Below, piece by piece: positions 27,401 to 46,460 of a stretch of DNA of 64,000 bases; position 1 is the first letter of the stretch; each line of letters starts with the position of its first letter. This DNA comes from Macrostomum lignano (Eukaryota). The stretch is taken from assembly GCA_002269645.1 (NCBI GenBank), contig NIVC01000464.1, positions 186,001-250,000 on the forward strand, in the 5' to 3' direction. Position numbers and translations under genes: made by a program. The notes beneath the pieces were generated by a model. The model had not been told where the DNA came from, did no database searches, and saw only the letters and a list, made by a program, of their open reading frames with translations.

Positions 27401-30008
27401 AACAGCAACGGAAATTAAAAATCTGATTAGGATGGTGAAGACTCTTTAGCTACCTCTATAATTGTTCTTCAGGCCTTTCTTAGTTATCAGGCTTCTCCTT
27501 TAATAACTATACAGTATACGGAACCCTATTTGGTGATAGACTACTCCAGCGTCATCTAATTACATTTAGCAACTAATCAAAGCAATAACCGGCGCTATCC
27601 TATCGCAATTCACAGTTCAAACAAGTGGAGGAATACATGGCCTACCGGAAGCTTCCTAGAGCTCTTCGTCAGAGAATAGCGAACTACTATGAGCACCGCT
27701 ATCAGGGGAAGATGTTCAACGAGAATGACATTCTCAGCGAGCTCTCCGAATGTCTCAGAGAGGTATGAGCTCCCAACCAACTGCTCATTGGTTGGTTCGT
27801 TACAAGCGTACAACCACTATAAAAATAAGTGTAGTAAAGATGTCAGCAAACGAATAATCATTATCAAGTGATGTTAAAACGAAAATAAAGTTACTCTACA
27901 AAAATAAGCCTGTAACTTTTTTTCGACCAATTGAGACTGTTAATGAAGTGACTTCTATCTGGTCCTTGCATGCGAATTGCCTCCGTGTCTCTCTAACCCG
28001 CAGCAAATCATCAACTACAACTGTCGGGCTCTGGTTGCCGCAGTTCCATTCTTTACCTACGCCGATCAGGATTTCGTATCCGAGGTGGTCACCAGACTGA
28101 AGTACGAAGTATTCCAGCCCGGAGATCTTATCATTAAGGAGGGCACGATTGGAACTAAGATGTACTTTATTCAAGAGGGCATTGTGGATATAATTACTAA
28201 AGATGGCGAAGTGGCAACCAGTCTGTCGGACGGCTCATACTTTGGAGGTGAGTTCCACCCACTCATTAGAGAAAAGTTACTCTGATGATTTACTCTGTGC
28301 TTGTACCTTTTTATTTCTATTGAGGATAAAACAATCAAGCAAGGATTTCATGCAATAATGATGAGACGGGAGTGCTTGCTTTTCATCGGAAGTTAAAATT
28401 TGCAATTAACTCATGGATATATTGGACGCATGTTCACTGACTTGAATTAATTAACATGATATGTCACTCATGACAGGATATAGCACCAGCCAAAAGATAT
28501 TTCAGACAGCCTTGTTTTTTCAGTTTCGACGTCCCGATGAAGGATATCCTCAACGCAACCTATAAAGCATGGATTCTTAGCATGATCGGTCTTAATTAAA
28601 AGGATCGAGAGACGCCCTGCCATTTACAGGCTTCCACAGGCTTTGAAGTCACAGTTAAATTTCAATATTTGCAATACGCAGTTTCATTTGTCTCCGCTTC
28701 TTTCACAGAAATCTGCCTGCTGACAAATGCCAGACGCGTCGCAAGCGTTCGCGCTGAGACCTACTGCAATCTGTACTCCTTGGAGAGGGAAAACTTCCTC
28801 TCCGTGCTCGACAATTACCCGCTCATGAGGCGCACGATGGAGTCAGTGGCCGCCGAACGGCTCAGCAAAATTGGACAAAATCCACAACTGGTGAGCAACC
28901 GCGCCGACCTCAAGGAGGACCTCAATCTAGTCAAGGAGATCGTCGACCAAGCTGCAGCGGCGGCCGCCGAGGAGGCCGATTCTACCGACAATTCCGACGA
29001 TTGCGACGGAGGTCATTCAGCCTCGTCATCCTATCAGCGATCCCGGACGCCGACCCCGACGCCAGCCTACCAGCAAAAGCCGTCATGGGAGGCGACTACA
29101 TCGTCAGGAGCGGCGTTGACAATGCCCGGCGGAGAGCGGCGGAAGTCTGTAGTGCGGCTCGGTCTGGAGAAACTGGGAATTGCCAGGTAATAAATCCCTT
29201 TGTATAATATATAAATAGCTTTGGATATCCTTTAGTAGCCTTCTGCGCGTTCTTGTCGCTTGGTAGTTCATGCTGATACAACAAGTATTTGAGTTCGATT
29301 CGGTGAGCAATAGCGAAATGAAGCTGGGGCGGTTCGACTGTCGCTTTGTTTTGTGCAGGGCCCAATGTGATGTACGAGTCGATTTTATTTATTACGCTGC
29401 AGTGAATTAGCTTTCAATATATTTGCTCCAGTAACCAGTAATAACAAACAAGACGACTCGCAAGGAATACAAGCATAATTTAAATTGGTGGTAGAAAACC
29501 AGCTTATTAAACCTAAACTAACTACAAAAAACGATAATAATCCAAGAGACATAAATTAATGAAATCTAAAGTAAATTGTTGTTAAAATAACTTACATAAA
29601 AGCAATAAGTATATATTAAAAATTGTTTAACTTACAAACTAATTTAAATACCTTAATTAGCATGAACCTAAAATAATTGTTATAACGACCAAACTGACGA
29701 CGTAATTATATCAGAGACCACCTCAGTAAACAAACTACAAGCTTATAAGCAGCAACGATTTTAGTACATTTGCGGGTCTGCAATCGTAGATAACAAACTT
29801 CCAGTGTAACTCAATACCGATCTCCATGTTAACCAGGAACCGGTTTAGTGGCCGCAGACGCCACCACCAGCAACAGCAGCAGGGGCAGCAACAGGAGGAC
29901 CAAGAGGGGGATGAGTCGCAGGCCCAGCAGGTCGAGCTGCAGCCGCTGTCTTCGCCACCACCCTATGCGACGACAACGACCTGCCGTGTCGAAATTAACC
30001 ACGAATGA
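21466..30008 (+). CDS. HCN: Hyperpolarization-activated cyclic nucleotide-gated (HCN/Ih) channel. Exons: ~21466-22327 (possible intron 21925-21998), 23023-23186, 23277-23444, 23613-23710, [23978-24127 | 25458-25607 | 26198-26347], 26992-27210, 27616-27762, 28004-28247, 28709-29186 (or to stop 29190), 29837-30008. 5' end unresolved.
   Basis: HCN domain [20 protein letters not shown]...[15 protein letters not shown]4 [32 protein letters not shown], pore [12 protein letters not shown]-linker [44 protein letters not shown]. Canonical splice sites and consistent phases. Confidence 0.95.
23978..24127 (+). CDS. HCN: HCN alternative exon A (S4-S5 linker/S5): [50 protein letters not shown]
   Basis: TTTCAG acceptor, GTGAAG donor, 150 nt, phase 0/0, no stops. 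Confidence 0.85.
25458..25607 (+). CDS. HCN: HCN alternative exon B: [50 protein letters not shown]
   Basis: TTGCAG acceptor, GTGACT donor, 150 nt, phase 0/0, no stops. Confidence 0.85.
26198..26347 (+). CDS. HCN: HCN alternative exon C (most canonical): [50 protein letters not shown]
   Basis: TTTCAG acceptor, GTACCC donor, 150 nt, phase 0/0; closest to invertebrate Ih FLNMASVFMRIFNL. Confidence 0.9.
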
Positions 30009-32353
30009 CAGCTGTACTGGTATATTTTTTAAATTTCAAAGCTTAAATAAAACTTCAGAAAATGTTGTTTTATTTTTTTCTGCCACAATCAACCAAAATT
30101 AGCGAAACAATAAGGTTTGAGGTTATAAGAAACGAGTAATATTAATTAATTACTTTCAGTGTAAGAATTCTGTTTAAAGGAAGATGAAAAGCCAAAAAAA
30201 ACAAAGAATCAAAATTAGGAATGAATACATATAATTTGTTTCTCCTATTTTTTCAATCTAAAAATACGCATTGGTAGTAAATTTTCCTCAAGTTTTATTT
30301 GCATTCTCTTGTTAAAAAAGTAATCCGACACGACGTCATGAGTTATTCATAATCCACGAAGAAATACGTACGTTTAAAACAGTTTAAACCAAAACCAATC
30401 GCGCGAATTAAAAGTCTACACGCACTGCTTTTAGTAGCAACCAACAAAAAAGTTTTCTGCTATTTTCAACAAAACGTTTGTTTGTTACACCAACTTTGTA
30501 AACGCGATTTATTTTGTTTGAATTTGCATTAAAACTGTCTTTGAGATGCTATCTATCTATATTTAATAAAGTCTAATTAACTAAAGTAATCTACTATTCT
30601 AGTCACCTATTTTACATACCGAATTTCCTGCCACGGCACATCATAAGTCAGCCTAAAACAGCACGAATAAGTATTACATTTGAGCACTTGATGTGTAATT
30701 ATTGAGGACATTCCACATCCCCAATGAAATAAAGCTTCTCAGTGCTCAATGCTTCGATTATTAAACCCCGTTCATTCATGTACACACCGTGGACAGCTGA
30801 AGTAGAAATCTACACATGATTTTATTAGAAGTGACCTTCAGGCCGGTAATTAGCAGGAACGCATATTTTTGGACCCTATTTGGAACCATGCGCTCTCCAG
30901 AGCCATGCCACGAGCTAATAAATGCACTGGCGATATGTTTGAGTTGTTTTTACACCTGTAGAGATAATGGACTGTCAATTCTATTACCATACGAGTAATA
31001 GTAATACGGTTACTTGACTGATTGATGATTTTCAAAAGCACCCTAAACCATAAATCAATAAAATTGTCTCAAACATTTTCTCAATAATTTGCATAATAAA
31101 TATTCCTACGCCTGGCATAGTTCTACTAAAAGCAATTTGTAGTAATCATTTGCACAACACTCTGCAAATATTAAACCGATTATATTTCATAAATAGCATG
31201 TGTGTATGTAATTAATTACATCAGCCATCCGCTTCTTCGATGACAACCAATAGCAAATACCAGAAACCCAGCAGCATTTTTGCAATCAATAACCACTGCA
31301 TGCGAAAGATTTTTTCATCAATAATTTGTTATGCCGCAGTCGAAAGAAAATACAACCTGTTCGCAAACTGCAAGCATTAAATAACTACAGTTCAGGAACG
31401 ATAGCTATTACTGACACCTTGACACGGTCTTTTCTGCCGAATATAAAGCGAATATAATTTGGATTAGGACTAACGGTACTTTTTCAGCCAAAAACTCATC
31501 GTCAATATTGAAACTTTACAATTTTAACACTTCAATTCATAGTAGCTTTTCTAATTCTGAACCTTTTAATTGCATAAAATTAGGCGATTTGTTTGATTAG
31601 AATTTGACCAGCGCAAGACCGCCACCAAACTGCTAACAACAAAACACCGATCTGGTCGTGAATCAAACGGGCTGTCGCAGGACCTGACTGAAGGCATCAT
31701 ACGCTTGTATTCGAGTTTAACGGGCCCTACTCAGACACTCGGTACACTAAACAGCGAATGCATAAAAAAGCGGCATAAAAAACTTTATGAGCCAAGGAGC
31801 GAGTCATTCGAACGGAGCAGGAGCAAAGAAGAGAAAGATCGATTAATATTCGATGGAAATGCCGTACAATGTGAAATGGTAGCCTTTAGGCTTCGAATTT
31901 AAAAGCGAAGTTGCAATTTTCATACTCACGGACTTGCACCACGGGTACTTTGCTAACAAGACACTTCGAGGCGCTCTCGAAAACCAAGGCGACGACCTGG
32001 ACAGCAGACAGGCAGGCCAATTTTACGATGGTAAGAGTCGGGAGAACAACAGCTGAGCTGCTCTGCTTGGATAGAATGAGCAGAAAATAATACAAGAATT
32101 AACTTTATTGACCCCATGGCAGAGACTGCAGAAAAATAACTGTTTTTTTGTTATCGTGAGAGGGCCTATACATGTATATATAATGTATGTATATATAAAT
32201 TTATATATTAAAACGCGAAGAGCAGAAGCCAACAAAAATCAAACGAACAAAGTGTCGTGTTTTTATAACAATAAGTTCGGACTTAGTAAGTCTATAATAG
32301 AGTATAGCGTTTTCCTCCCAGCTTGAGACTGGCTGGAGCAGCTGAGTTCAGAA

Positions 32354-35300
32354 TTACACATTGGAGAAGCTGCACTCAACCAGGCTGAAGCGAACTGATC
32401 GGCTCAGCATCCTGCACTGGTGCAGCTGCACCCGACGGCTGGCCGTCACCACCGAGCTCGGGCTGGAGCCTGCTGGCAGGCTGAGCTGCAAACTGCCGGA
32501 GCTACGGCTGATGCGCACCGGTTTGGACATTCGAGGCGCGCACACGCTGCTCAAATGGGTGGACATGGACGGCGATTTGAGCAATGCTGTGCCATGGTAC
32601 CATGCGTCACGTTTGCGTCTGTGTCTTCAAGACGCTAAAACTGTGTCTGTGCCTGTTCCCGACACTAAAACTGTGTCTGTGTCTGTTCCCGACACTAAAA
32701 CTGGGTCTGTTCCCGACACTAAAACTGTGTCTGTGTCTGTTCCCGACACTAAAACTGTGTCTGTGTCTGTTCCCGACACTAAAACTGGGTCTGTTCCCGA
32801 CACTAAAACTGGGTCTGTTCCCGACACTAAAACTGGGTCTGTTCCCGACACTAAAACTGGGTCTGTTCCCGACACTAAAACTGTGTCTGTTCCCGACACT
32901 AAAACTGTGTCTGTGTCTGTTCCCGACACTAAAACTGTGTCTGTGTCTGTTCCCGACACTAAAACTGGGTCTGTTCCCGACACTAAAACTGGGTCTGTTC
33001 CCGACACTAAAACTGGGTCTGTTCCCGACACTAAAACTGGGTCTGTTCCCGACACTAAAACTGTGTCTGTTCCCGACACTAAAACTGTGTCTGTGTCTGT
33101 TCCCGACACTAAAACTGTGTCTGTGTCTGTTCCCGACACTAAAACTGTGTCTGTGTCTGTTCCCGACACTAAAACTGGGTCTGTTCCCGACACTAAAACT
33201 GGGTCTGTTCCCGACACTAAAACTGGGTCTGTTCCCGACACTAAAACTGGGTCTGTTCCCGACACTAAAACTGGGTCTGTTCCCGACACTAAAACTGTGT
33301 CTGTTCCCGACACTAAAACTGGGTCTGTTCCTGACACTAAAACTGGGTCTGTTCCTGACACTAAAACTGGGTCTGTTCCCGACACTAAAACTGTGTCTGT
33401 GTCTGTTCCCGACACTAAAACTGTGTCTGTTCCCGACACTAAAACTGGGTCTGTTCCCGACACTAAAACTGTGTCTGTGTCTGTTCCCGACACTAAAACT
33501 GGGTCTGTTCCCGACACTAAAACTGGGTCTGTTCCCGACACTAAAACTGTGTCTGTTCCTGACACTAGCACTGTGTCTGTGTCTGTGTAGCCAGCACTGT
33601 CTACTTATCAGTAGACAAACTCTGATCGGCAAAAATCGACCTTTCCTACAATAATCCTTATTCTTTGTCGAGTGCAATTTTCACCTACACTAAAATACCT
33701 GGATAACCGAGGATACGTTAACAGTCTGACTTACGTGTTGTAGACCGCAGTGCGTAGGCCCAAGCACAGGCACGCTTCTGGCCGGCGGCCGCGGCAGCCG
33801 TTCAGGCAGTCCGGGCACTCAGTCTGGTGCACCGTCAGAGAACCGGAAATGCTGAACGCTGGCGCTGCGCTTGACGGCACGCAGGCCACGCGGCTAGAGT
33901 CGTTGTGTCGCGCACCCGAGCGACAGCGGCATTCGTATCCGCCCCACTCATTCACGCACTCGCCGTAGGGCTGGCAGAGGCTGGGGTTCTCCTGGCACTC
34001 GTTACGATCTGCAATTCGGTGTCGTAAAAATTAGCTCTCATTTCAGCCTTGAGAGTGGGATGCGTTGCCAGCGGTCCAGCGCGTCGCTCTGATGTGCCAG
34101 CAGCCCAGGCTCGATTCCAAGTGCAGTCGCATTAATTTGTAGCTAAGTTGGAATCTCGGCTTGGCTCGTGCAAAACAGTGAATTTTTCATGCCCAACGAT
34201 AAATAAAGTTGGGGCCGCTGTACACTCCTGTGTGAGTGTGCGCCTGTGCGTATGACTGCGTACCTAATTTGCGCCCATGTGTGCCTGCTCAGGGGAGTCG
34301 GCGGAATGGGCAGTAATGCCTCTCGCCGGTTGTGTGACAATGCCGCTTGAAGTGCGCCAGGGTGCACACAGCCCCCTGCCTCCATTTTTCTATGCTATAT
34401 GTGTATGTCAGTCTGTAGAGGAATATTCATTTAGCATTTAATCAGCGTATAACAATACTGAAAAAATGCACGCAATCAGTTTTGGACATGAATGCAGACA
34501 AAATGACAGATTTCAAAACACACCAAGACTTAAATAAACTAAGACTCACCGCGGCACAGCTTCGACCGGCTGTCTAATGCGAAGCCTGCATAGCAGCGGC
34601 AGGTGTACGACCCTGGCGTGTTGATGCAGTCTCCCATCAAGCACAGGTCGCTACCGGCTCTGCTGCATTCGTCAATGTCTGAGAAGGGAAAGAAAAAATC
34701 CGCATTTTTCTGCAAGTCACCGACTATTCGTGCAACTTGTCCTGGAATTTATGCTTAATTGATCCAAGAATTTCAACTCAAACTTTTCAATTTCTTTACT
34801 CCTTTGAATAGTTGTCTCATTCTACATCTCTGCTTTTGCTAAATGTACCTTATTTTGTTTAAAGTTTGCTAAGTTCGCTAAAAGTTACATTTCAAATTGT
34901 GGTACACTAGGTAACAATGGCATGAGAACAGTGCATTCGAGGATGTTACATAATGCGCCGTCCACCATTGTCTCTTTTAGTATTTGTACCACCCTCTGGG
35001 AGATAGAAGACCAAAAGCAGAAGAGCCTCACCAACGCAGCTCTTTTTATCGGCGGCCTGTCGGAAGCCCAGGTAGCAGGAGCATTCGAAATCGCGGCCCC
35101 GTTCCAGGCAGCGGCCGTTTTGACACGGACCTTCGCCGCTGCCACCGCCCAGAGTGAGGGTCTGGCAGGCGCCGCCACCGCTCAGGCTTGCATACTGGTC
35201 GCTGGCCAAGTCGCGGCGCCTTGAAGGGCCTTCGCGGACGACTGTCAGGCTGCCATCGATAGAGAAGTCTGGCACGCCTCGATCAGGACTGCCCAGATGG

Positions 35301-38300
35301 GCGTAGTCACCGCCAGAGCTGCTGCCGGAGCTTCCACTACTGCCGCTGCTGGAACTGCTGCCGCGACCGCCACTGAGGCCGTGAATGATCACCTTGTTTG
35401 TGTCTGGAGTTGTGGAACATCAATTGCACTTCATAGTCGCTTCATGATCAATTAATAAAGTTTGCAGCAGTAAATCAGAAATTTCAAACTTCCCAAAAAG
35501 TATGCTTAAAATACGATACAATCGCATCGACGTAAATCAAAGCTATCGCAAGACCGCCTACCTGCATTGTAGTCGTAGGGCTCACAGCGCCTACGCTGTG
35601 GATCAACATTTTTAAATCCGGGATAGCAGAAGCACTGATACAGTCCTGAGGCCGGGGAGTTGACGCAGTGCCCCATGCCGCCGCAAACGCCAGGCCGTTC
35701 TGCGCAATATCCTGTCTCGCGCATATCGGCCTTCAAGCAGAAGCGCTTGTCATGTGATAATCGATATCCAGAGGCGCAGGAGCAGGTGAACTGATGCGAC
35801 CCGTTCAGATCGTGACAGCGCCCTCGGCCGCAGACGTAGCCAAATTTCTGACAGTAGGTTTTGTGGAATAGACGCTGCAGCGGATCCGATGGTAGAGGAA
35901 AGCCAGTGGGTGCAACGGCAGTCTCTTTAGGCGGAGCTGGGGCTCTTCCTGGCACACATGAGCGGCCACCAGGGCCCGAGACGTATCCGGCGTTGCAGGC
36001 GCAGGCGAAGTTGCGCCCGCCGCGATCAACGCATGCACCGTTAGGTCCGCAGACTGTGGGGTTGCGCTGGCAGAAGGTGACGCGCGGAGCGGACAGACGG
36101 CAGTTCTGCTGGTCGCCAGTCAGCTCAAAGCCGCGATAACAAACGCACTGAAATCTGCCGGAGCCCAGGTTTTGGCAGGCACCGTTGCGGCAGATGTCAA
36201 ACACTTGGCAAGGGTTGATCTCTGTTGAACGGTAGATGGATTTTAATAACTGGAGTTGAGTTTTAAAATGTACGAAGTAGAACCTAACTAGAGTAACTCA
36301 TTAGCAGTAAAAACAGCATTTTCAAAACATGACAATGTGCGATTGTGACATGAAGACTTAGAGCCAATGATTTTGTGAAATAAGTTACATAAGGAATGAA
36401 TTCGGTACCAGTACGCTCGCATTTAGGGTGCAGTCGAGGCTTTTCAAGAATACATGTGGGAGATTAGCTAGCTAGGGGGTTGAAGCCTCATGTTTAAGAG
36501 CGTCGGACTCACGTCTGAAAGGTCAGGGGCTCGATTCTCGACCTTACTCGGAACAATCTGGGTCCTTGAGCAAGACACTTGACTCTGCATTGCTTCTGTT
36601 CACCCAGAGCTTTAAAATGGGTGCCAGCATTTGCTGGGGTAATTGAGGGTGTTTGTGGCGATCCCCCTCCCAGTCCTTGGACTGAACAGCCGTACGCAGC
36701 CTTCAGAAGCGTCGCGCAATCGAACAATTGTGTCAACCTGCCTCACCTGGCTCTCTGCGTCTGTCCGGTAGGCAAGATCTTCTATCATCAGCTGGACGGT
36801 ATCCCGTTTGACAGTCGCAGTAGAAGTCGGTCGCAGACACGCTGACGCATCGGCCGTAGGGTTGACAAACTGACACGCGTCGAGTGGCGTCTTCGCAGTA
36901 GAGCTGCGGCGCAGGAGGCTGCGGAGCGTCGCTCAGCTGAGCCGGCAGGCAGGAGCGGCTGTCAGCCGACTGCCTGTGGTCAGGGTTTCGGCAGAAGCAA
37001 ATGTAGCTGTCATCGCTGGGACTCGCGCCGATGGCTAGACACTCGCCGATGTCGCTAGGGCAGGTGCGCTGACGATTACAAGCATCACCAACAGTTGTTG
37101 TCGTTGGAGGTGGCACGGTGGTGGTGGGTTCGGGCAGGCAGTTCAGACCGTCATTTCTGACGCGATAGCCGGGACGACAGCTGCAGTAGAAGTTTCTCTC
37201 GCCGACAGGCCTGCAGACACCGCCTGGGCTGCAGGCTCCGGGATTCGATTGGCAGTAGTTCTGCTGGCGGCGTCGACAACTCCGACCGTCGGCAGCAGCC
37301 TCGTAGCCGGAGTTGCAGCGGCACTGAAAGTCAGGACGGCCGCCGATGACAGTGTTGACGCAGCTGCCGTGGCTGCAGAGACCGCTACGTCTGGTGCAGA
37401 GGTCGGTGACGCGCTCTGTCGTTGTAAGTGATTTTTCAGTGAAATTCATCATCAAAATTGAAATTCATTCCCGAGTCTTTAACTGGCAAACTTGCATCAG
37501 TTGTGTAACCGAACACATATCGTGTAATCCCGTTACCTGAGCAACTTTTTCCATCCGAGCTAAGTTCGAATCCTGGAAAACACTGGCAGCGAAAGTCTGT
37601 CGGACCATTACTGATACAGGTGCCTCCGACTCCACAGACTCCAACGTGTGCATCACAATAACCTGAAATTCGTTATTTTTTACACTCTGTTTGTTGTTAA
37701 AAACAATTTCTAAGATTGCCTTGTTATGGTTGTTGGGCTGAAAATGATTTTTATTAGTCTCTGAGCTAGCCTATCTGTAAAGTTACATTTCTTAGCCTTT
37801 GCTATTTCAAAAAACGACACCAGCTGAGTACTATAAGATCTGAGTTATCGATTCTAAATTCTTATCATTATTACAACCTGCAGCTGTTAATGCAGCACAC
37901 GCACGCAGCAATAACAATTGCTGTTACAGCCAGGTAAATACAGGTCGCCAGAGTACGCAAGAAGGGTATTCGGTTGGACAATAATTCTGCTGCCTTTTCT
38001 AGAACGAGAAATCTGCAACATTGTTTTCTCAGGAAGGCGGCTAAAAATAGAAGAATCTTTATCAGCGCCAGTAGGAACTGGTTTCGTTCAAGAGACGAGT
38101 TGATGGAATGGAAGGTGAAAATACATAAAAAGAGAAATGGAATTCCGTCTTAATAACCTGTTGGTTTCTTTATAGTTGCACAGCCTCTAATAGGAAAGGC
38201 AAGTTCAGGAGAACTTCTGGTCCGCAGGCGAGGCAGACAGGTGAAGAGGCTGCACTGCTGTGAGGGGACCATTCCGCATCCGTACCATGTTCCTCAGCTG

Positions 38301-41300
38301 CGACTGGGGCACTCTCTCTCGACTTCACTTTGTTTCCTTACTAATTGGCCCACCGTTCAGGTCCGGGACGAAGGCATTTCTTCTGTTCCTATTAAGCTGT
38401 TTGCCCCCGAGTTTGAAACTTTTGGTCTTCTGACAGGCTTTTACTTTATTCAACTGGCAGATGGGCCCGTGAATTCAGTTAACCTTGACTGATGAATCAC
38501 CTGCACTGGGACATCGACTGGACAGAAAGCCAAGGGAGACTAACTCTGTGCATTACAAGATATTTTTAGTCAAAGATCCTTATGATTCTTATTTTAATTA
38601 TTAAATTTAGACACAGGGTAGCTGTGCGCACCCTGTCACACAACCGGCGAGAGGCATTACTGCCCACTCCGCCGACTCCCCTGAGCAGGCGCACAAGCGC
38701 GCGGATACGTACGCAGTCATACGCACAGGCACACACACACAGGAGTGTACAGCGGCCCTAACTTTGTTTATCGTTAGGGCTTCACTGTGCCTTGGGGTTG
38801 GCCCCCCAAGGCTGTTAATTGCACGAGCCAAGCTGAGATTCCAATTCAGCCACAAATTAATGTGACTGCACTTTGAATCGAGCCTGGGCCGCTGGCACAT
38901 CAGAGCCCCATCCCCAAGACTCACTTTGCAGCCTCTCGCAGCGCCGCTCCACGCGGTTGTAAGTGAGTCCACTGGAGCACAGGCACCTGGATTGTTTGGG
39001 AGAATAATTGTAAATTTCATAATTAAAGCACCAGTTTAAAAAGTTATCCCGATCCCTCAAGGGTGGCAACGCACCTGATATCAGACTCGCCATCAGGCAA
39101 GCAGCTTCCGCCTCCACAAATGCCGGGGATGCTGCAGAAGTTCAATTCTGAAAAAATAAGGACGGGGCTGATCATTAAAAATGGTTTGTTTTATCGGTTT
39201 CTTGAATCCTAAATTACGATGCAGCGGCTTTGTTTAAATTTGCAGTTGCCAGTCTACTGGAAATACTTCTAATAGGCCCAGGGTTAGCAAAGCTGAACGT
39301 ACTTCAGGCAGATTAAAAAAACTGCTTTCTATCATTCCAGTTTGATAACGTCTGCGTAAGAAAGAAAATATTTTTATGACACCTAAAGAAACTTTCGTCG
39401 CTTCTGCTTGATAGCGGGTTTGTTTTAACGAATTTATAAACCTGTTTCTTAGTTTATGAAGTTGAATTCTGTAAGTACCTTAAAATGCTTCATAGATAAA
39501 CTTATAGTTCATAAAAACTATTTGAAAAAAGATCGACCAAAGCAGCATCTTCACCCCTTGACACTCATGGTCCACATGAATTCACGGACTGCTCAAGTAG
39601 AAGGACGGGAAACCACGTTTCTTGGAAACTTTTACCACAGAATTAACTCGTTTAAACAGATAATCCCAATTTTATGAACAAGAAGCTTTATGAATACCAA
39701 TAGAACTATAAGAAAGGCAAGAAATATCAAGAATCAACATTGGCTCTGACTCCTATTAAAAGCAATAACGGTTTTTGTACTGAAAAAATAAGAACATATT
39801 TTTCGGTAAAAACCTCCCTGCTAAAAAACTCTGCTAAAGTTTTCCAAGAAACCTAGCTTCCTTTGCATGTCCTTGCATGAAACTCTGCCTGCTACCTGAG
39901 ACAATTTTTATTGTCAAAATGTTGACACACTTGAAGATAGAAAACCTATGCCAGAGGCGCTCCTCTGAAGGAATAAATTGTTTTTACAACCTCTGGCCAA
40001 GCCGACTGTCAGTCAATTAAAGCAAGAGCCCGTGCGAATACAATTATCAGCTCAAAGCTGTGCTGCAGTTGTAAAATTGGTAGTGAAGCAGAGCTCGTAA
40101 ACCTTATGCTTGGCATTCCTTCGTTAAAATGTTGCGTTTTACAAGGCATTTTAACTTCTCCTAGTCTGCAATTCTTCTCTGCTTTTCGTACACTGGGGGA
40201 GGACGAGGTGACATGAAAATAATTTAGTTAGAGCCGCCATGGTTGAGGGAAGCGTCTAGCTCAACAGACTTCCATGCGCTGGGTGGCTTCTTGTCGACCC
40301 AAATACAATGCATCATGCTTTACACACCAATTAAAGAGCCAATTAATTAGGGTTTAGGAATTTTTTCACACCAAAATTATTTACTGCGCAGTTTTTTATG
40401 GCACAAAGGGATTCGAAGAAAGGCGACGCCGCGGCCGACTGATCTAAGAGAGACTTTATTCTTGCCGACATGAGCCACTTGCTGCTTTTATCACTATACA
40501 TTCTGACACTATTTTCTAGCATTCACGCCCCCACTGCAATAAACAGGTTGATGCTTACATACACACTGTGTTTCTGTGTTCGTTTAATCAACCGATTGTC
40601 ACCTTTACTCACAGACTCTCAAAAACAGCATTTTAATCCGCTTACTAACGCAGGCTCGGCCACTGCTGATGCGGCCGAAGCCGCAGCCGCTTCCTCCAGC
40701 ACCGCGGCACGACCGACAGGCGAAGCCCCAGGCTCGCCCGAAGCTGTTGCAGCACTCCTCCCGGCTGATAAACACGGATGTGAGCTGGCCAGAGCAGGAG
40801 CCCGAGGCGGACTGGACATTGCTGTAGCAGGGGCCTTTGTCCACCACTGGGAATGGGTATTTTGAGTACAGATCCGGTATGAAATGCGATACTCTTAGGT
40901 CCAACCGTTATTTAAATCGAACTTACCCAAACAACCGTAATAACATGCTTTCTACATGGGTTGTTATCAGAGTTGTTAAGTAGTCCTTGCTATATCCTAA
41001 CCCATAGTCCTAACCCTAAATCTGACCTAAACTCTAGCACTAACCCTAAACCTGACCTAAACTCTAGCCCTATACCCTAAACCTGACCTAAACCCTAGCC
41101 CTATACCCTAAACCTGACCTAAACCCTAGCCCTATACCATAAACTTGACCTAAACTCTAAAACCCAATACTTTAAACCTCACCAACCCTAGCCCTATACC
41201 CTAAAAACCTAAATCGTTTTTTTTATCACTAGAAATCGACAACCGTTTCTCGACTTCTGCACTTTCACTATGCATACAAAGTAGGAAGTACTGTGTTATT

Positions 41301-44300
41301 TTATAAATTAATTTCTTATGTTTTAGAATTACGTAGCATTAAAAAGGGTTTGAACTCTGTAAAATAATGCCCTGAGAAAAGACCGTTTTATTTAAATACG
41401 AGGGTTGTCCCAGAAATAGAGGGAAAAACTGGTACAGAGGCTGATTGTGATATTCGAATTTGATGCAACTTGCGTTATAAGTAGAAAAAAATCCAATGGT
41501 TGTTTTGCTTTTTAAATGGGGTAAAAATGTCAATTCATTAAAAAGTTATGCTTATAATTAGAACAAGAGGTAGGGGGTAGAGTTACACCAAGTCGAGGGG
41601 TCTGCAAAGTCGGTCACGCAGCATCGCCATCGCCCTTGACTGATGATTTTTCGACGAAGTCACCTCTCAGCCTGTAGCCTGCAGCTGTTCTGCTTCTGCT
41701 TCTGCTTCAGATTAGCTTCTGCTTTTTTCGAGGGCTTATGAGCTCTTTTGTTTCTCTTCAGCTTCTTCGTTTGCTTTTGTTTTCGAATCGATGGTTCTGA
41801 CTAAGCATCAAAAGTTTAGTCTATGGCTAGCATAGTAGGCTCGACTTGGTGTAACTCTACCCCCTACCCCTTGTTCTAGTTATAGGCATAACTTTTGAAT
41901 GAATTGACATTTTTACCCCATTTAAAAAGCAAAACAACCATTGGATTTTTTTCTACTTATGACGCAAGTTGCATCAAATTCGAATATCACAGTCAGCTTC
42001 TATACCGGTTTTTCCCACTATTTCTGGGACAACCCTCGTACATTAGAGGGATATGATATCAAGCGTATCATACCAGCTTCACATTTCGGTAGTCATAAAG
42101 CTACATATAACTTCCTTTCTCGCTCCTCCCTAACAACCAGATATAAAACAATGTGCAGCATGATTCTCTAAACCAACCGTCACAGGAGGGGCCGCTGAAG
42201 CCATCGTTGCAACTGCAGACGCCAGTGGAGAGGCAGCGTCCATTACCGGAGCAGAAGTTTGGGCAGGTGGCTGCAAAAAAGCACATCATGGACGCATTAA
42301 GAATGAGAGTCTATGGCACAAAGTGACACTATAATAGACAACATACCAAACTGGCAGGCGCTGCCGCTGAACCCTGGTGCGCACTGGCATCTGCCCCCAG
42401 CAACACAACGGCCCCCGTTCTCGCATGGCCTCGGACAGGAAGCTATACCGACAGCTGAAAGATAAATGCAAAAACTGCAGTTGAATCAACTTACAATTTA
42501 CCCTAAGAGTAACGCAAGGCAGGGATTACGCTATGGAACGCATTAGAGGGAAAGGTAAGCGAAAGTAGGAATGAAGTATTCGTACTTCCTTCCACAGTTG
42601 GCGTTGCTGAAACAGCTGTTGCTAGCATCAGCAGAGCCAGAGCTAGTCCTGTCGGCTTCTTTGCTTTCATTTGTGAAGACAATTTTCTTGAACAGGAGTT
42701 CTTTTACTAATAAGTGTGCCTTTACGCTGCCGTTACAACTTGGCAAAGAAACCTAAAGTGAAGGGGTTTCTGCTGCCGCGAGCCGCTCGCACAGCCAGTA
42801 TTTATAGCGATCTCATCGGGCCACTAAGTATTAGTAAAGCTAAAAAGCAATCTGCACTCAAGCAGGGGGCGGGGCTGTGCAAGTAGTGCTTCAGCCTAGA
42901 CTTAATCGGGCGCAGAATTAAGCGCATCGAGCAGTCAGCAACTGTTTTCAGAAATGCACTGACTGCAGGACAGACAGGTCATCTTCTGTGCACTCTGGTG
43001 CTGCTGCTGAATTCCAAACTAGGCTGCGGTGCAAAGCGAGAGCTGCTAATTGCATCTGCTAGGGTGCAAGGTCAACCTTCTGACTGACAGACATGCGGAA
43101 AGGAGCAAGCTATTCTATCAATTTAGATTTGCTTTGGATTTCAAATTTTAAGCACGAGTTACATGAAAATTTGGGTGTCTATTTCACCTTGTAGGATATC
43201 CAGATATGTGTAACGCTGCTTGTGCTAGTAATATTATCATAATCACTTTTGGTTAGAGCGTGGGACTCACGACTGAAAGGTCGGGGGTTCGATCCTCGAC
43301 CCACTTGGAACAATTTGCGTCCTTGGGCAAGACACTTAACTCTGCATTGCTTCAGCTCAAAATATGTTAGTCAAGATAAACTGTTATTAGAGTTGGTTAT
43401 TAAACTCACTTTTGAAAAAAAACATGCAAAATTTAAAGTTGAGAACTCACCATCGCTCCCACCGCTGCCGCCACTGCTGCGACCGTCGCAGCTGTACTGC
43501 ACTACACTGTCAGGGCAGAAGCACAGGTTGGGTCCGATGCACTGCCCACCTGAGCCGCAACCGCTGTCGCATACTGCTGCAAAGTTGGTAAGAAGAAAAA
43601 CACAGAAATTAACTTCTTTAGCTCCATATTTCCGACATTTCATATCTCCGACACTTCACATCTCCGACATTTCATATCTCCGACATTTCATATCTCCGAC
43701 ACTTCACATCTCCGACATTTCATATCTCCGACATTTCATATCTCCGACACTTCACATCTCCGACATTTCATATCTCCGACATTTCATATCTCTGACATTT
43801 CATATCTCCGACACTTCATTTCTCCGACATTTCATATCTCGACACTTCATTTCTCCGACACTTCATTTCTCCGACACTTCACATCTCCGACACTTCACAT
43901 CTCCGACACTTCACATCTCCGACACTTCACATCTCCGACACTTCATATCTCCGACACCTCATATCTCCGACACTTCATATTTCCGACACTTCATATCTCC
44001 GAAACCTCATATTTCCGACACTTCATATTTCCGACACAATATCTTCGAGACCTCATGTCTCCGACACTTCATATCTCCCACACTTCATATCTCCGACACT
44101 TCATATCTCCGACACTTCATATCTCCGACACTTCATATCTCCGACACTTCATATCTCCGACACTTCATATCTCCAACATTTCATATCTCCGACACTTCAT
44201 ATCTCCGGCACTTCATATCTCCGACACTTCATATCTCCGACACCTCATATCTCCGACATTTCACATCTCCGACACTTCATTTCTCCGACACTTCACATCT

Positions 44301-46460
44301 CCGACACTTCACATCTCCGACACTTCACATCTCCGACACTTCATATCTCCGACACCTCATATCTCCGACACTTCATATTTCCGACACTTCATATCTCCGA
44401 AACCTCATATTTCCGACACTTCATATTTCCGACACAATATCTTCGAGACCTCATGTCTCCGACACTTCATATCTCCGACATTTCATGTCTCCGACACTTC
44501 ACATCTCCCACACTTCATATCTCCGACACTTCATATCTCCGACACTTCATATCTCCGACACTTCATATCTCCGACACTTCATATCTCCGACACTTCATAT
44601 CTCCAACATTTCATATCTCCGACACTTCATATCTCCGGCACTTCATATCTCCGACACTTCATATCTCCGACACCTCATATCTCCGACATTTCACATCTCC
44701 GACACTTTATATCTCTGATATTTCATATTTCATATCTCCGACAAGCGTAACGGAGATGTGAAGTTTCGGAGATATAAAAGAGCCCCAGTTTTTTCGAGCT
44801 TCAATGGAGGCAGCTCAGTGACGCCAAGCAAATTAAAAAGCGCCAATAAAGAGCGACTTGAACTTTAAAAATAAGGACAGTCTGTCGCATAAGGACATGC
44901 CAAAAATGCTAGTTTGCATTATATTTAGATATTGCGTCGCATATGCCATGCTCTAGATGAATTTGCCTGCTGCTCCGTACATGTAGCAGATTCCCCAGTG
45001 CGTGTATCAGCACAAAAGCATATAAGCTTATTCGCATTTGCCAATTTTCCATTTATCATTTCCGACTTTCATTAGCATGGGCAATAATTGATCTGTCTGA
45101 ACTACTGTGACTGATATATAGCTTTAGCTTCGCTTCCATAAGCCTTGGTCGATGCTTCAAGCCTATAGGCAAACATCGAAACCATTTTGGAGCTCGGAGC
45201 AAACAAGTCAGGCCGAGTGCCGTTTAGAAAATTGCGGGCCCTTGCTTCCTGAAATTAAAAAACTCAGCCAAACGGCCCCCCTTCCCCATGACGGCCCGGT
45301 TTGGCTTGGCTTGGCCAGAGGGTTTTAGGGCCGGCTTTTTGCAGCGAAATTGACGAAAAAGAATGACCTAAGCTGGGGGGGGGGGGGGTGAAGTTTACCC
45401 TGCGCCAACCAAAGCTAATTAAGGAGGAAATTTTCAAAATCGACAACCTTGCCATTTTTGATCCATGCCCCCCCCCACCCGCCTACGCGATCGCAAAAAA
45501 TCGTTTGCTACTTTCTTTGCCTCCACGCATCATATGAAATATGAAGGCTATGGTCAGTTTGCTGAATAAAAAATACTGACGAGTGCTGGCCCCCAACTGC
45601 GACAATGATTACTTCTGCTGCATACTTGGCTAGGCATGAAATTAAATGTGGAGTGTCAGCTCTCAGTGCTGATACAACTGAATACACAAAATAACTCTAA
45701 ACAAAGTAACAACAACTCACGAATCGAGCATTTGTTAGTCGTTGAGTCCCTGAGCCAGCCGGGGCAGCAAACCGTGTTCGATCCGATGACGCACAGGTTG
45801 TCCCCATCGCTGTGAAATAAATAGATGGTCGAGGATAATAGTTGTCCATGGTGCAGTTATCTTGAAGACAGAAATTTTACAGCTGAAGTAGAAGAGCACT
45901 GTACTAGATTGGGGATGAGAAAGATGCGACATGAGAGGGGAGGGGGGAGAGAGGAGACTGGAGAGGAGGGGAGATAAGAGATGGGAGATAAGATTAGAGA
46001 GAAGAGGGGAGTAGATGGAGAGAGAGGAGAGGGGAGAGGAGTGGAGAGTAGATACGAGTAAAGAGAGCTGAGAAGAGCCATACAAGCTGTGAGCTGTGAT
46101 TGCTACTGAGAAGTTTCAAAGAACCCGAAGGCCAGATAGAGAGGCTTCGCGGGCCGGAGTTAGCCGACTCCTGCTCTGGAGAACGCACAGCGCTGAATGG
46201 GGTTCAGCCATAGACAAATTCGTTAAGGGCGTACTGAATGCACTGGCGATACCACAAATATGCGTTCGTTATGTCCTACATGAACTGAATATGAAAACCT
46301 GATTAGACTTTCGGTATCACGGTAAAATTCACGGAAGAGATAGATAGTGTTGGCAAAATATTTAACAAGTTCCTTTAAAGTCTCACCTAGCCACACCGGA
46401 GGCCAGAACTAGCATGATGAAGCAGGCAAAATGAATCAGCTGTTGGGACTTGAGCGGCAT
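32354..46460 (-). CDS. FBN: Short fibrillin-like secreted EGF protein (~1,106 aa), 15 exons: 46460-46387, 45809-45721, 43576-43451, 42454-42347, 42270-42178, 40846-40646, 39147-39075, 38986-38925, 37662-37537, 37415-36747, 36221-35562, 35403-35032, 34678-34550, 34008-33735, 32618(or 32624)-32354
   Basis: Signal peptide MPLKSQQLIHFACFIMLVLASGVA; FUN-like DNLCVIGSNTVCCPGWLRDSTTNKCSIPVC; three EGFs; hybrid domain GPCY..CSGQL..ECCNSFGRAWGFAC; ~13 further EGFs including cbEGFs DIDEC and DRNEC; C-terminal ECPDCLNG and RKR|DA furin site. All phases close. Confidence 0.85.
32635..33590. repeat. Composite 18/24/30-bp minisatellite (CCCGACACTAAAACTG[G/TGTCTGT]GTCTGTT) in the last intron of the fibrillin-like gene
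   Basis: Visible tandem units; source of the VPDTKTGS and related spurious ORFs. Confidence 0.95.
34030..34385 (+). mobile_element. SINE family 2 copy (intronic)
   Basis: GCGGTCCAGCGCGTCGCTCTG...GGCTCGATTCC B-box; matches the other family-2 copies. Confidence 0.8.
36476..36722 (+). mobile_element. SINE family 1 copy, 3'-truncated (intronic)
   Basis: Matches the 13592 copy. Confidence 0.8.
38595..38915 (-). mobile_element. SINE family 2 copy (intronic, starts ~10 nt from a donor site)
   Basis: Matches copies at 17510 and 55505. Confidence 0.8.
40995..41210. repeat. Degenerate telomere-like (CCCTAAACCTGACCTAAACCCTAG) tandem repeat
   Basis: Visible CCCTAA-containing ~29-nt units; a similar TTAGG-rich tract occurs at ~55005-55095. 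Confidence 0.7.
41399..42038. mobile_element. Tc1/mariner-type MITE with ~199-bp terminal inverted repeats
   Basis: TA|CGAGGGTTGTCCC...GGGACAACCCTCG|TA; 41399-41597 is the near-perfect reverse complement of 41840-42038; TA target duplication. Confidence 0.9.
43249..43360 (+). mobile_element. SINE family 1, partial copy
   Basis: GGTTAGAGCG...GGGGTTCGATCC...GTCCTTGGGCAAGACACTTAACTCTGC. Confidence 0.75.
43625..44745. repeat. 16-bp satellite (CTCCGACACTTCATAT)n, ~1.1 kb, intronic
   Basis: Visible tandem units with an internal higher-order duplication; source of the HFISPTLHISD ORFs. Confidence 0.95.
45910..46070. repeat. GA-rich low-complexity tract
   Basis: Purine-rich (GA)n-like sequence. 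Confidence 0.8.

Follow-up and report, generated by a model that had tools for sequence, protein, structure and literature searches.

A fibrillin-type N terminus on a short, TB-less protein of the flatworm Macrostomum lignano

Introduction

Fibrillins, which make up elastic microfibrils (FBN1/2/3, and one fibrillin each in invertebrates), are proteins of ~2,800-2,900 aa with seven TB domains, hyb2 and ~43 cbEGFs, whereas the gene analysed here, from the free-living flatworm Macrostomum lignano, encodes 1,082 aa with no TB domain, no hyb2 and two cbEGFs. A sequence-only reading of the 64-kb window (the whole stretch of DNA analysed) had taken the product for a lineage-specific mini-fibrillin in which both fibrillin termini are kept. 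Is this protein a remodelled fibrillin, a chimera that borrowed a fibrillin cassette, or something else altogether?

Results

Hand-building the gene from splice sites gave 15 GT-AG exons with consistent phases on the minus strand (46460-32354), running from an ATG at 46460 to a stop codon that ends at 32354. The 1,082-aa translation is identical to P0050 (PAA82532.1, BOX15_Mlig022114g2 of M. lignano in GenBank). The span 32354-46460 proposed from sequence alone is exactly that of the annotated CDS, and the proposed length, ~1,100 aa, was close. The GenBank model is a genome-guided RNA-seq assembly, the annotation having been made with StringTie/TACO (PMC5730564). Transcripts revealing many more exons had been named as evidence against the mini-fibrillin reading; this RNA-seq-derived model has the same exons and does not refute it. 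AATAAA at 32104-32109 (minus strand), ~250 nt after the stop codon, is by sequence pattern only a likely polyadenylation signal. The flanks are unrelated, with an HCN-like channel on one side and ORFs including one with a Methyltransf_16 match on the other, and no EGF- or TB-like reading frame lies outside the gene in the 64-kb window.

A second, independent locus in the genome carries the same 15 exons. Between the two copies there are 19 synonymous and 6 non-synonymous differences (pN/pS ~0.10), and their aligned introns diverge by ~3%; by this comparison the gene is under purifying selection. These copy differences, together with Pfam EGF-family E-values as low as 1e-37, place the gene far beyond chance. 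All four versions of the protein in the databases include exon 15, which is identical in the paralogous copy; P0051 and P0052, older models of this gene, are shorter because they leave out exons. The locus is a genuine, transcribed M. lignano gene for a secreted matrix protein. No expression or protein data on BOX15_Mlig022114g2 were found in the literature searched.

The protein, 10.8% of which is cysteine, runs from a signal peptide through FUN, EGF1-3, a hybrid domain of eight cysteines, 11 non-calcium EGFs and two cbEGFs to a Cys-rich tail. Exon 1 (46387-46460; this and all following exons on the minus strand) holds the start codon, a predicted signal peptide (aa 1-24, MPLKSQQLIHFACFIMLVLASGVA) and the donor AG/gtgaga. 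The signal peptide noticed earlier is visible in the Kyte-Doolittle profile as a hydrophobic core averaging 2.25, with small residues at -3/-1. Exon 2 (45721-45809) encodes the FUN core (aa 25-54), whose four cysteines (C-x7-CC-x11-C) are spaced identically to those of FBN1 FUN in 2m74, to which it aligns without gaps; Pfam Fibrillin_U_N scores it at E 0.0065 and 16.9 bits, under the 26.2-bit cut-off. EGF1 and most of a Gly/Ser linker toward EGF2 (aa 55-96) occupy exon 3 (43451-43576), EGF2 (aa 97-132; Pfam EGF, E 5e-6; aligned to FBN1 EGF2 in 5ms9) exon 4 (42347-42454), and EGF3 (aa 133-163; Pfam EGF_Teneurin/EGF_2; aligned to FBN1 EGF3, with the same loop lengths of 3, 5, 5, 1 and 8) exon 5 (42178-42270).

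Exon 6 (40646-40846) encodes the hyb1-like hybrid domain (aa 164-230), with eight cysteines, CC rather than CCC, and GRAWG. It reaches 23.7 bits against Pfam TB (cut-off 22.2 bits), although TB goes unreported in the whole-protein scan. Searched alone against the PDB, it matched FBN1 hyb1 (29.1 bits) better than TB4 (21.6), hyb2 (21.0) or an LTBP1 TB (19.3), and its AF2 model (pLDDT 72) found its best fold matches in FBN1 TB4, hyb2 and hyb1. A hyb1 scan of 1.84 billion representative proteins returned 13 non-self matches, mostly hyb1-type domains of fibrillins and LTBPs, and no second M. lignano protein.

The best PDB matches of the N terminus as a whole were human fibrillin-1 FUN-EGF3 (2m74; E 2.8e-12, gapless through FUN) and EGF2-EGF3-hyb1-cbEGF1 (5ms9; E 4e-21), the collinearity of which bears out the fibrillin order FUN-EGF1-EGF2-EGF3-hyb1 claimed earlier. 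In a four-way alignment of the cassette, 43 columns are invariant, and the M. lignano sequence is 38% identical to that of human FBN1. Homology of the cassette to fibrillin is very probable and, judged by sequence comparison, the first ~270 residues descend, in unchanged order, from fibrillin FUN, EGF1-3, hyb1 and a cbEGF1-equivalent EGF. Some fibrillin features are absent from it. The hyb1 of fibrillins has nine cysteines; the ninth, a free one thought to form intermolecular disulfides, is present in every canonical fibrillin hyb1 examined and missing here. The protein also has no fibrillin-type N-terminal furin site, its only RX[K/R]R being RGRR near the C terminus. Furthermore, two elements of FBN1 FUN with a part in N-C binding (PMC3794157), R62 and the YNAY loop, are not conserved in the 2m74 alignment.

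Beyond the cassette, exon 7 (39075-39147) holds the first half of EGF4, aligned to FBN1 cbEGF1 in 5ms9 with its calcium-binding motif lost (KLNFC), and exon 8 (38925-38986) the second half. Exon 9 (37537-37662) encodes the non-calcium-binding EGF5 (Pfam cEGF/FXa_inhibition). The two long exons described earlier as carrying four EGFs each were recovered as exon 10 (669 nt; 36747-37415), with EGF6-9 and the Pro/Thr-rich linkers PEPTTTVPPPTTTTVG and PAQLSDAPQPPAPQL, and exon 11 (660 nt; 35562-36221), with EGF10-13 and Pro-rich linkers. Exon 12 (35032-35403) begins with an 86-residue Gly/Ser-rich linker, containing SRRR and the first copy of a motif P..P.FSI.GSLTV, and ends with EGF14; exon 13 (34550-34678) encodes cbEGF15 (DIDEC, C-x-N-x4-Y-x-C; Pfam EGF_CA).

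The sequence-only reading described this region well: EGF4-14 are indeed 11 EGFs, all lacking D/N-x-D/N-E/Q-C, exactly two cbEGFs follow (DIDEC and DRNEC), Pro/Thr-rich or Gly/Ser-rich sequence lies between several of the EGFs, and neither strand of the 64 kb encodes a CCC-type TB. Its claim that the TB/cbEGF core has been replaced is therefore supported. The mid-protein EGFs have a cbEGF-type loop geometry (5-7/4-5/8-13/1/12-13), keep remnants of C-x-[DN]-x(4-8)-[FY]-x-C and match Pfam cEGF, EGF_CA and FXa_inhibition; canonical 5-residue linkers are limited to EGF14-cbEGF15-cbEGF16. By their residue patterns, the middle modules are cbEGF-shaped and shorn of the N-terminal calcium-binding residues.

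Exon 14 (33735-34008), with the same donor as the annotated model (AC/gtaagt), encodes cbEGF16 (DRNEC), CPDCLNG, RGRR, the onset of a degenerate EGF-like Cys pattern and the second copy of P..P.FSI.GSLTV. Exon 15 (32354-32546) supplies the C-terminal 64 residues, with three cysteines, and the stop codon; neither a recognisable domain nor a Pfam or PDB match was found in this tail. The CxxC-NG motif seen earlier is present as CPDCLNG (aa 992-998; 33817-33797). The RKR furin site is not: it maps to 32617-32609, inside intron 14 of the RNA-seq-derived model, whose exon 15 acceptor is at 32546, and the upstream acceptor used for that reading is in frame but unannotated. RGRR (aa 1000-1003; 33793-33782) follows CPDCLNG within ~4 residues. 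Its cleavage is uncertain, since it stands between cysteines of the EGF-like pattern and is followed by Pro. Alignment of the tail to that of human FBN1 scored no better than shuffles. Of the two termini said to be retained, the N terminus stands on the 2m74, 5ms9 and hyb1 scores, and the C-terminal likeness appears weak, a short motif (CxxC-x-NG plus RGRR) without statistical support.

Over the first 400 residues, two Schmidtea mediterranea proteins are collinear with the M. lignano protein: dd_Smed_v4_1886_0_1 (SMESG000008188.1, 750 aa; 139 bits, E 1e-41) and dd_Smed_v4_10142_0_1 (SMESG000081553.1, 1,141 aa; 86 bits, E 6e-23). Both are of similar overall size and share the signal peptide, FUN, EGFs, 8-Cys hyb1 and a mostly non-calcium EGF array. 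They differ in having two EGFs rather than three between FUN and hyb1, and in an EGF after hyb1 that keeps the calcium motif (DINEC/DIDEC) lost from EGF4. The planarian in-silico matrisome, which was compiled by a screen for the InterPro domains that define matrisome proteins, labels both only 'FBN2 / egf repeat, fibrillin-like' (PMC6453901). They are enriched in the cell clusters of pharynx and muscle, which are the chief producers of ECM in planarians, and RNAi of dd_10142 gave no clear phenotype. On this collinearity, the three proteins probably belong to one flatworm family. Because Schmidtea mediterranea has these relatives, the lineage specificity proposed earlier holds for the phylum, not for Macrostomum.

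Discussion

The fibrillins share with the M. lignano protein a signal peptide followed by FUN-EGF1-EGF2-EGF3-hyb1-(cb)EGF, cbEGF-type modules, a high Cys content, and a C-terminal end of tandem cbEGFs followed by CxxC-x-NG and RX[K/R]R. The Pro/Thr and Gly/Ser linkers and the packing of four EGFs into each of two exons set the M. lignano protein and gene apart, as does the tail (~110 aa with eight cysteines, versus two in fibrillins, and no detectable similarity). The LTBPs, of the same superfamily, have a hybrid domain, cbEGF arrays and a comparable size (1,300-1,800 aa); in LTBP-1L/2 a FUN-like 4-Cys domain adjoins an EGF as here, and LTBP4 and LTBP2 rank near the top of the full-length database matches. 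They differ in their CCC-type TB domains, including the TGF-beta propeptide binder, in N-terminal order and in a shorter first FUN loop. The fibulins, and insect proteins wrongly annotated as fibrillin-1, are likewise secreted cbEGF arrays (~1,000-1,300 aa), and several of them also turn up in the full-length search; fibulins, however, have no FUN or hybrid domain and end in Fibulin_C (PF22914), for which the Pfam scan of the M. lignano protein gave no match.

The explanation we moderately favour is an expressed, constrained gene for a secreted, Cys-rich ECM glycoprotein of the fibrillin/LTBP superfamily, an ancestral fibrillin having been remodelled into a short TB-less form. A fibrillin-like paralog or exon-shuffled chimera is a less likely but serious competitor: the 5' cassette of a canonical fibrillin gene would have been duplicated and joined to EGFs unrelated to it, the microfibrils would be made by a full-length fibrillin encoded elsewhere in the Macrostomum genome, and this protein would be an accessory or matricellular binder of, for example, heparan sulfate, BMP/TGF-beta prodomains or other matrix proteins. 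Every EGF-module exon here is phase 1-1, an easily shuffled class, and LTBP-1L/2 and VWCE contain FUN-EGF pairs as well (PMC3794157). In the hemichordate Ptychodera flava, a short 'fibrillin-1-like' protein (XP_070543732.1, 433 aa) has two EGF3-hyb-cbEGF units whose hybrids likewise lack the ninth cysteine, although it is a much shorter deuterostome protein with a duplicated unit and no visible FUN. Against a chimera, the hyb1 scan of 1.84 billion representatives found no second M. lignano protein, the TB domain IPR017878 occurs once only in the planarian in-silico matrisome, as hyb1 of the short dd_1886, and published surveys of Schistosoma mansoni turned up no fibrillin carrying TB and hybrid domains (PMC3306419).

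The M. lignano adhesive protein Mlig-ap1 carries EGF arrays described as 'fibrillin-like' (PMC8621496), and the linkers suggest heavy glycosylation. Still, it is unlikely that the protein belongs to an adhesive or glandular product, such as that of the duo-gland temporary adhesion system, and not to the body-wide matrix: the Lys/Arg-rich regions and C-type lectin domains described for ap1 (PMC8621496) are absent, and the gene goes unmentioned in the literature searched, including flatworm adhesion papers. The sequence-only reading had suggested a short-period microfibril or an adhesive/ECM protein; the analogy with planarian relatives that are muscle- and pharynx-enriched matrisome genes favours an ordinary ECM role over that of an adhesive secretion.

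A generic EGF-repeat protein, like a fibrillin only by convergence or chance among Cys-rich modules, is disfavoured and very improbable. EGF2-3 alone match WIF-1 and teneurins well, and both Fibrillin_U_N and whole-protein TB fall short; yet five modules in a row match fibrillin without a change of order, an order kept in two planarian proteins, FUN Cys spacing and EGF3 loop lengths are identical to those of FBN1, and the hybrid domain scores best to hyb1. To our knowledge, hybrid/TB-type domains occur only in the fibrillin/LTBP superfamily. Least credible is a truncated or mis-joined piece of a full-length fibrillin gene: the assembly is repeat-rich and partly duplicated (PMC5730564) and the older models skip exons, but the gene opens with a signal peptide and closes with a stop codon and AATAAA, has unrelated neighbours and no further EGF- or TB-like frame in 64 kb, recurs with the same 15 exons at an independent locus, and has similarly short planarian relatives that were curated for longest CDS.

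If the remodelled-fibrillin explanation is right, the secreted protein would probably come from muscle, to go by the planarian relative of 1,141 aa. Its folded modules together would span ~39 nm, joined by linkers that are probably O-glycosylated and confer flexibility. The N-terminal cassette may act as a matrix or self-association module. Since fibrillin-1 FUN-EGF3 binds cbEGF41-43 (PMC3794157), the calcium-stabilised C-terminal EGF-cbEGF-cbEGF triple is a possible partner of it, and a proprotein convertase may cleave at RGRR. Head-to-tail polymerisation into putative microfibril-like filaments is conceivable by analogy, though we consider it doubtful.

Our verdict, as far as sequence can indicate, is that flatworms harbour a family of putative short, TB-less fibrillin derivatives. 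Since planarians have two similar genes, an ancestral fibrillin seems not to have simply been lost in flatworms but to have been reshaped there into a short protein devoid of TB domains.

Results

Gene model and selection

All EGF-like reading frames at 33.7-46.5 kb lie on the minus strand, and splice sites yielded a 15-exon model of the fibrillin-like gene in which every intron is GT-AG and the phases are consistent. The ATG is at window position 46460, the stop codon ends at 32354, and the CDS of 3,249 nt encodes 1,082 aa. The exons, all on the minus strand, lie at 46460-46387 (exon 1), 45809-45721 (exon 2, 89 nt, FUN), 43576-43451 (exon 3), 42454-42347 (exon 4), 42270-42178 (exon 5), 40846-40646 (exon 6, 201 nt, hyb1), 39147-39075 (exon 7), 38986-38925 (exon 8), 37662-37537 (exon 9), 37415-36747 (exon 10, 669 nt), 36221-35562 (exon 11, 660 nt), 35403-35032 (exon 12), 34678-34550 (exon 13), 34008-33735 (exon 14), and 32546-32354 (exon 15). 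The spliced translation is exactly that of PAA82532.1 from the free-living flatworm Macrostomum lignano ("hypothetical protein BOX15_Mlig022114g2"), and the window is a segment of contig NIVC01000464.1 (assembly GCA_002269645.1). Because the GenBank annotation was built on a genome-guided RNA-seq transcriptome (StringTie/TACO, with ORFs called by TransDecoder; PMC5730564), the exon structure is, via that annotation, transcript-derived.

A second genomic copy on a different contig (g1, PAA68737.1) has the same 15 exons as the copy in the window (g2). The two are 99% identical and differ at 19 synonymous and 6 non-synonymous positions (pN/pS 0.10), whereas their aligned introns differ by about 3%, besides large indels in tandem repeats. 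Therefore, the reading frame is under purifying selection. Two exons carry four EGFs each. Their origin by recent duplication was ruled out, since the non-Cys identity of corresponding EGFs is only 18-36%; judged from sequence, intron loss is the more likely cause. No further EGF- or TB-like frames were found elsewhere in the 64-kb window, and tRNA and Rfam scans of the window gave no matches. A literature search by gene identifiers found no paper discussing the M. lignano gene or its planarian relatives.

A fibrillin-type N-terminal cassette

A hydrophobic stretch (aa 1-24) forms the signal peptide. [quoted passage not shown] The furin site RX(K/R)R expected before FUN is absent, as it also is in insect fibrillin-2 proteins (PMC13525746). 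FUN aligned without gaps to FBN1 in 2m74, the PDB structure of human fibrillin-1 FUN-EGF3, in a 35.7-bit stretch; this structure was the top PDB match for FUN-EGF1 alone (whole-query E 2.8e-12), and the runner-up, WIF-1, covers the EGF only. For residues 25-272, the top match among 177,635 distinct PDB sequences was 5ms9 (fibrillin-1 EGF2-EGF3-hyb1-cbEGF1; E 4e-21), collinear across all four modules, and 2m74 matched too. Pfam alone is borderline for the cassette: Fibrillin_U_N scored 16.9 bits, below its cut-off of 26.2, and TB scored just over its own. A word index of 5.8 billion proteins queried with the 248-aa N-terminus returned one irrelevant match, and this index missed the query protein itself.

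The order FUN-EGF1-EGF2-EGF3-hyb1-cbEGF1 is present, with the calcium-binding motif of the sixth module lost (KLNFC). The three short EGFs after FUN have loop lengths of 3,5,5,1,8. An 18-residue Gly/Ser linker separates EGF1 from EGF2, and fibrillin-1 has a flexible linker at the same place. Residue R62 and the YNAY loop of the fibrillin-1 FUN are not conserved. In a four-way alignment of the M. lignano protein, two planarian proteins, and human FBN1, 43 columns are invariant; the M. lignano cassette shares 38% identity with human FBN1, which exceeds its identity to either planarian protein. By these comparisons, the N-terminus is fibrillin-like, and the cassette appears to be the most conserved part of the protein among the parts that could be compared. 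The collinear 2m74 and 5ms9 matches thus bear out the sequence-only reading that a fibrillin N-terminus is kept.

A hybrid domain lacking the ninth cysteine

The first hybrid domain (hyb1) is encoded by a single 201-nt exon with 8 cysteines, including a CC pair, and GRAWG; the exon scores above the Pfam TB cut-off. Searched alone against PDB, it matched FBN1 hyb1 best (29.1 bits), ahead of TB4 (21.6), hyb2 (21.0), and LTBP1 TB3 (19.3). An AlphaFold model of the exon from a 34-sequence alignment reached pLDDT 72, with the last 17 residues unmodelled, and the top four Foldseek matches were FBN1 TB4, hyb2, and hyb1, at E-values that are weak because the domain is small. Modelling of the whole protein without an alignment was uninformative (mean pLDDT 35.9). 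In contrast to the nine cysteines of canonical fibrillin hyb1, where an extra free Cys follows Cys2, the M. lignano domain has eight: the site reads SVFISR instead of the G[VI]VCTK of canonical exons. The ninth cysteine was present in every canonical fibrillin hyb1 exon retrieved.

Scanned exhaustively by HMMER with the hyb1 exon, 1.84 billion representatives yielded only 14 proteins at E <= 1e-3 and no ortholog among them, a lack that is not evidence of absence, as the planarian relatives themselves fall below the sensitivity of the scan. Most of the 13 non-self matches came from insects, a hemichordate, amphioxus, fish, and marine metagenomes and represent exons or fragments of hyb1 type that belong to fibrillins or LTBP-like proteins. 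The hyb1 profile search recovered only single-exon fragments (48-116 aa) and no full-length named fibrillins. The nearest database relatives of the M. lignano hyb1 are metagenome exons (P0037, P0053, P0100) with 46-47% identity, 8 cysteines, and a shared ECCNS.G.AWG; single hyb1-like exons of this kind occur on two marine metagenome contigs (L003, ENA ERZ27292072, 882 bp; L004, a Tara Oceans scaffold, 529 bp). The hemichordate "fibrillin-1-like" protein of Ptychodera flava (XP_070543732.1, P0040; 433 aa) consists of two EGF3-hyb-cbEGF units, and both its hybrid domains also lack the ninth cysteine. From this architecture, short fibrillin-cassette proteins may exist outside flatworms.

A second hybrid domain was not found in the window, where the CC...G.AWG signature occurs only once. 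Likewise, none of the frames of the 64 kb contains the CCC...AWG pattern of a TB domain; the sole TB-type match is the CC hybrid domain.

A decalcified EGF array

Thirteen cbEGF-shaped EGFs lie downstream of hyb1. The first 11 (EGF4-14) lack the D/N-x-D/N-E/Q-C motif, and remnants of C-x-[DN]-x(4-8)-[FY]-x-C are often kept; the full calcium-binding consensus is found only in EGF15 (DIDEC) and EGF16 (DRNEC). The 1,082-aa protein thus has 16 EGFs and one degenerate pattern, with the calcium-binding motif in 2. The linkers between the middle EGFs range from 6 to 86 residues, several being Pro/Thr-rich (PEPTTTVPPPTTTTVG) or Gly/Ser-rich, and the canonical 5-residue spacing occurs only in EGF14-cbEGF15-cbEGF16. 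Summing module lengths from PMC3794157, the folded modules would span about 39 nm. As the sequence-only reading had it, the TB/cbEGF core is gone: the 64 kb hold no CCC TB, and only two cbEGFs are left.

Two copies of a 16-residue motif, P....P.FSI.GSLTV (window 35267-35220 and 33877-33830; aa 799-814 and 972-987), bracket EGF14-cbEGF15-cbEGF16, with a basic cluster (SRRR, RGRR) 7-16 residues after each. The copies align locally with a score of 48 (shuffles, 26 +/- 4), and the pair could represent putative processing or docking sites.

The C-terminal tail

The tail contains CPDCLNG followed by C-RGRR, the RGRR (aa 1000) being the sole RX(K/R)R of the protein; CxxC-x-NG lies 21 and RGRR 29 residues after the last cbEGF. 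Fibrillins carry, beyond their last cbEGF, a unique region in which two cysteines and a furin site RX(K/R)R are found (PMC3306419). The placing of both elements matches this layout, through a motif that is short and defined after the fact. The M. lignano tail, however, has eight cysteines against the two of the fibrillin C-terminal domain; cysteines lie on either side of RGRR, which is then followed by proline, and those beyond it fit a degenerate EGF-like pattern spanning the last intron. Neither the tail nor its last 64 residues matched Pfam or PDB, and Smith-Waterman alignment to the human FBN1 tail (an approximate query, so that the score serves as a lead only) gave 25, with shuffles at 25 +/- 4. 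Neither a Fibulin_C module nor a fibrillin C-terminal propeptide is supported by Pfam, PDB, or this alignment. The fibrillin likeness of the C-terminus is therefore only suggestive, and of the proposal that both fibrillin termini are kept, the N-terminal half stands and the C-terminal half is tentative.

The RKR furin site named in the sequence-only reading (32617-32609) falls inside intron 14 of the annotated model and becomes coding only through an unannotated upstream acceptor; otherwise, the splice model and domain matches show the domain description of that reading to be right. This acceptor (acacag followed by A, near 32621 in window 32609-32625) is in frame with exon 15 and, if used, would add 25 residues, RKR among them. 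Conservation cannot decide its use because g1 and g2 do not differ over the 160 nt that precede the annotated acceptor. A suspected leucine-rich-repeat exon at 32361-32640 of the plus strand, which would overlap the last exon, was dropped for want of Pfam support.

Planarian relatives

The in-silico planarian matrisome of Cote et al. (2019, supplementary tables) lists two Schmidtea mediterranea proteins named FBN2 by best human match: dd_Smed_v4_1886_0_1 (dd_1886, SMESG000008188.1; annotated "egf repeat, fibrillin-like", 750 aa with a signal peptide, in the pharynx cluster) and dd_Smed_v4_10142_0_1 (dd_10142, SMESG000081553.1; 1,141 aa with a signal peptide, in the muscle cluster) (PMC6453901). 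Over the first 400 residues, which our comparisons cover, both have a signal peptide, FUN, two EGFs, an 8-Cys hyb1, one cbEGF, and non-calcium-binding EGFs. By BLASTP, the first 411 M. lignano residues matched dd_1886 with 139 bits (E 1e-41, 31% identity) and dd_10142 with 86 bits (E 6e-23). The alignments are collinear from the signal peptide on, the planarian proteins having one EGF fewer before hyb1, and the best PDB match of the dd_1886 N-terminus is also FBN1 5ms9. We propose a class of flatworm short fibrillin-like proteins with a signal peptide, FUN, 2/3 EGFs, an 8-Cys hyb1, and an EGF array, 750-1,150 aa long and without CCC TB; the pattern is common to all three proteins, for the planarian ones over the available 400 residues. 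Hence, the predicted lineage specificity holds at the flatworm level and fails as a Macrostomum-specific trait.

The matrisome tables derive from a transcriptome screen for InterPro domains that define the matrisome, and the TB domain (IPR017878) appears in them once only, in dd_1886, i.e., as its hybrid domain (PMC6453901). This single entry points to the absence of a canonical fibrillin or LTBP from planarians, though it is no proof. RNAi of dd_10142 was recorded as "none clear", with 6/9 wild type and 3/9 showing a small tail blastema.

Introns, repeats, and neighbours

Intron 14 contains a 24-nt minisatellite (window 32653-33580) of about 36 copies, open in several frames on both strands (for example, as PDTKTGSV repeats). 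It is about half as long in g1, where the intron measures 594 nt against 1,188 nt in g2. A 16-nt tandem repeat in intron 2 (CATATCTCCGACACTT; window 43625-44728, about 69 copies) creates long spurious plus-strand ORFs. Intron 5, whose length differs by about 700 nt between g1 and g2, holds a degenerate, CCCTAA-related telomere-like array of 31-nt period (window 40996-41205) and an inverted repeat resembling a foldback or MITE-like element (window 41397-41597 and 41840-42040; 201-nt arms, 95% complementary, 242 nt apart). A dispersed repeat of about 250 nt lies in opposite orientations in intron 13 (window 34086-34339) and intron 8 (window 38634-38906), with 92-94% identity.

The genes adjoining the fibrillin-like gene are unrelated to it. 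On its 3′ side, on the opposite strand and pointing towards it, are exons of an HCN-like cyclic-nucleotide-gated channel (window 21800-29190, plus strand; Pfam Ion_trans_N E 3e-24; cNMP_binding). The window also holds an ORF of a non-LTR retrotransposon that encodes RT and RNase H (57-2051, plus), a second RNase H fragment (52037-52672, plus), the first exon of a Rab/Ras-family GTPase running into a simple repeat (about 5445-5729, minus), and an exon matching Methyltransf_16, a lysine methyltransferase (54434-54823, minus).

Discussion

Fibrillins are defined by FUN with four conserved cysteines, seven TB domains (8-Cys, CCC), a second hybrid domain, 46-47 EGFs of which 42-43 are calcium-binding, and a length of about 2,800 aa, and they assemble into 10-12 nm beaded microfibrils (PMC3306419). 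The M. lignano protein shares FUN and the N-terminal module order. Judged on sequence, it falls outside the fibrillin family proper: TB domains (0/7), hyb2, an N-terminal furin site, and the ninth hyb1 cysteine are missing, and cbEGF number and size fall short. LTBPs have CCC-type TB domains, one of which binds the TGF-beta propeptide; LTBP identity was ruled out, as no CCC TB exists in the window. Fibulins carry a C-terminal Fibulin_C (FC) module, and neither the whole protein nor the tail matched PF22914 at E <= 1, which rules them out. By its domain content, the protein instead belongs to the fibrillin/LTBP superfamily in the broader sense and has a fibrillin-type N-terminus: it combines a TB/hybrid 8-Cys domain (Pfam TB, AF2 fold) with cbEGF-type modules and a signal peptide for secretion. 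The gene finding is real, and it is a new architectural variant inside a known superfamily, whose planarian members are catalogued, yet undescribed.

The protein is secreted and modular: a fibrillin N-terminal cassette leads into a string of decalcified EGFs with long linkers, which gives way to a canonical EGF-cbEGF-cbEGF end, and there is a single consensus site of dibasic type. The fibrillin-1 N-terminal cassette binds heparan sulfate, LTBPs, BMP prodomains, and cbEGF41-43 of another molecule (PMC3794157). By analogy, the M. lignano cassette may serve as an interaction module, for which the C-terminal EGF-cbEGF-cbEGF triple would be the obvious candidate partner. With its calcium sites lost and Pro/Thr and Gly/Ser linkers inserted, the middle should be flexible and is probably O-glycosylated. 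The planarian data suggest that muscle and pharynx cells, the usual ECM sources in flatworms, secrete the protein.

A bolder model is that, of the fibrillin lineage, flatworms retain only the genes for the M. lignano protein and its planarian relatives, and that these proteins still polymerise head-to-tail, N-terminal cassette to C-terminal cbEGF triple, after a convertase cut at RGRR, giving muscle-secreted, short-period, TB-less, flexible microfibrils. We consider this improbable. The missing free hyb1 cysteine, the non-conserved R62 and YNAY loop of FUN, the uncertain furin site, and the mild planarian RNAi result each argue against true microfibril formation. If it were true, the protein would be a natural minimal fibrillin, and microfibril assembly would be separable from the TB-domain and TGF-beta-tethering functions.

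For the flatworm Schistosoma mansoni, as for nematodes, fibrillin has been described as "lost or severely disrupted" (PMC3306419). The M. lignano locus and its two planarian relatives indicate what a "severely disrupted" fibrillin may look like. The FUN-EGF-hyb1 cassette is kept in two distantly related free-living flatworms, with purifying selection seen between the M. lignano copies, and no TB domains and hardly any calcium-binding sites are left. Our analysis also corrects database labels, the M. lignano protein being called "hypothetical" and the planarian ones "FBN2" by best BLAST match. RNAi is feasible in Macrostomum and planarians, and transgenesis in Macrostomum too. Since flatworm fibrillin was believed lost or disrupted, the finding is moderately interesting for ECM evolution, and it offers a natural minimal construct for asking which fibrillin parts serve secretion, matrix incorporation, and self-assembly.
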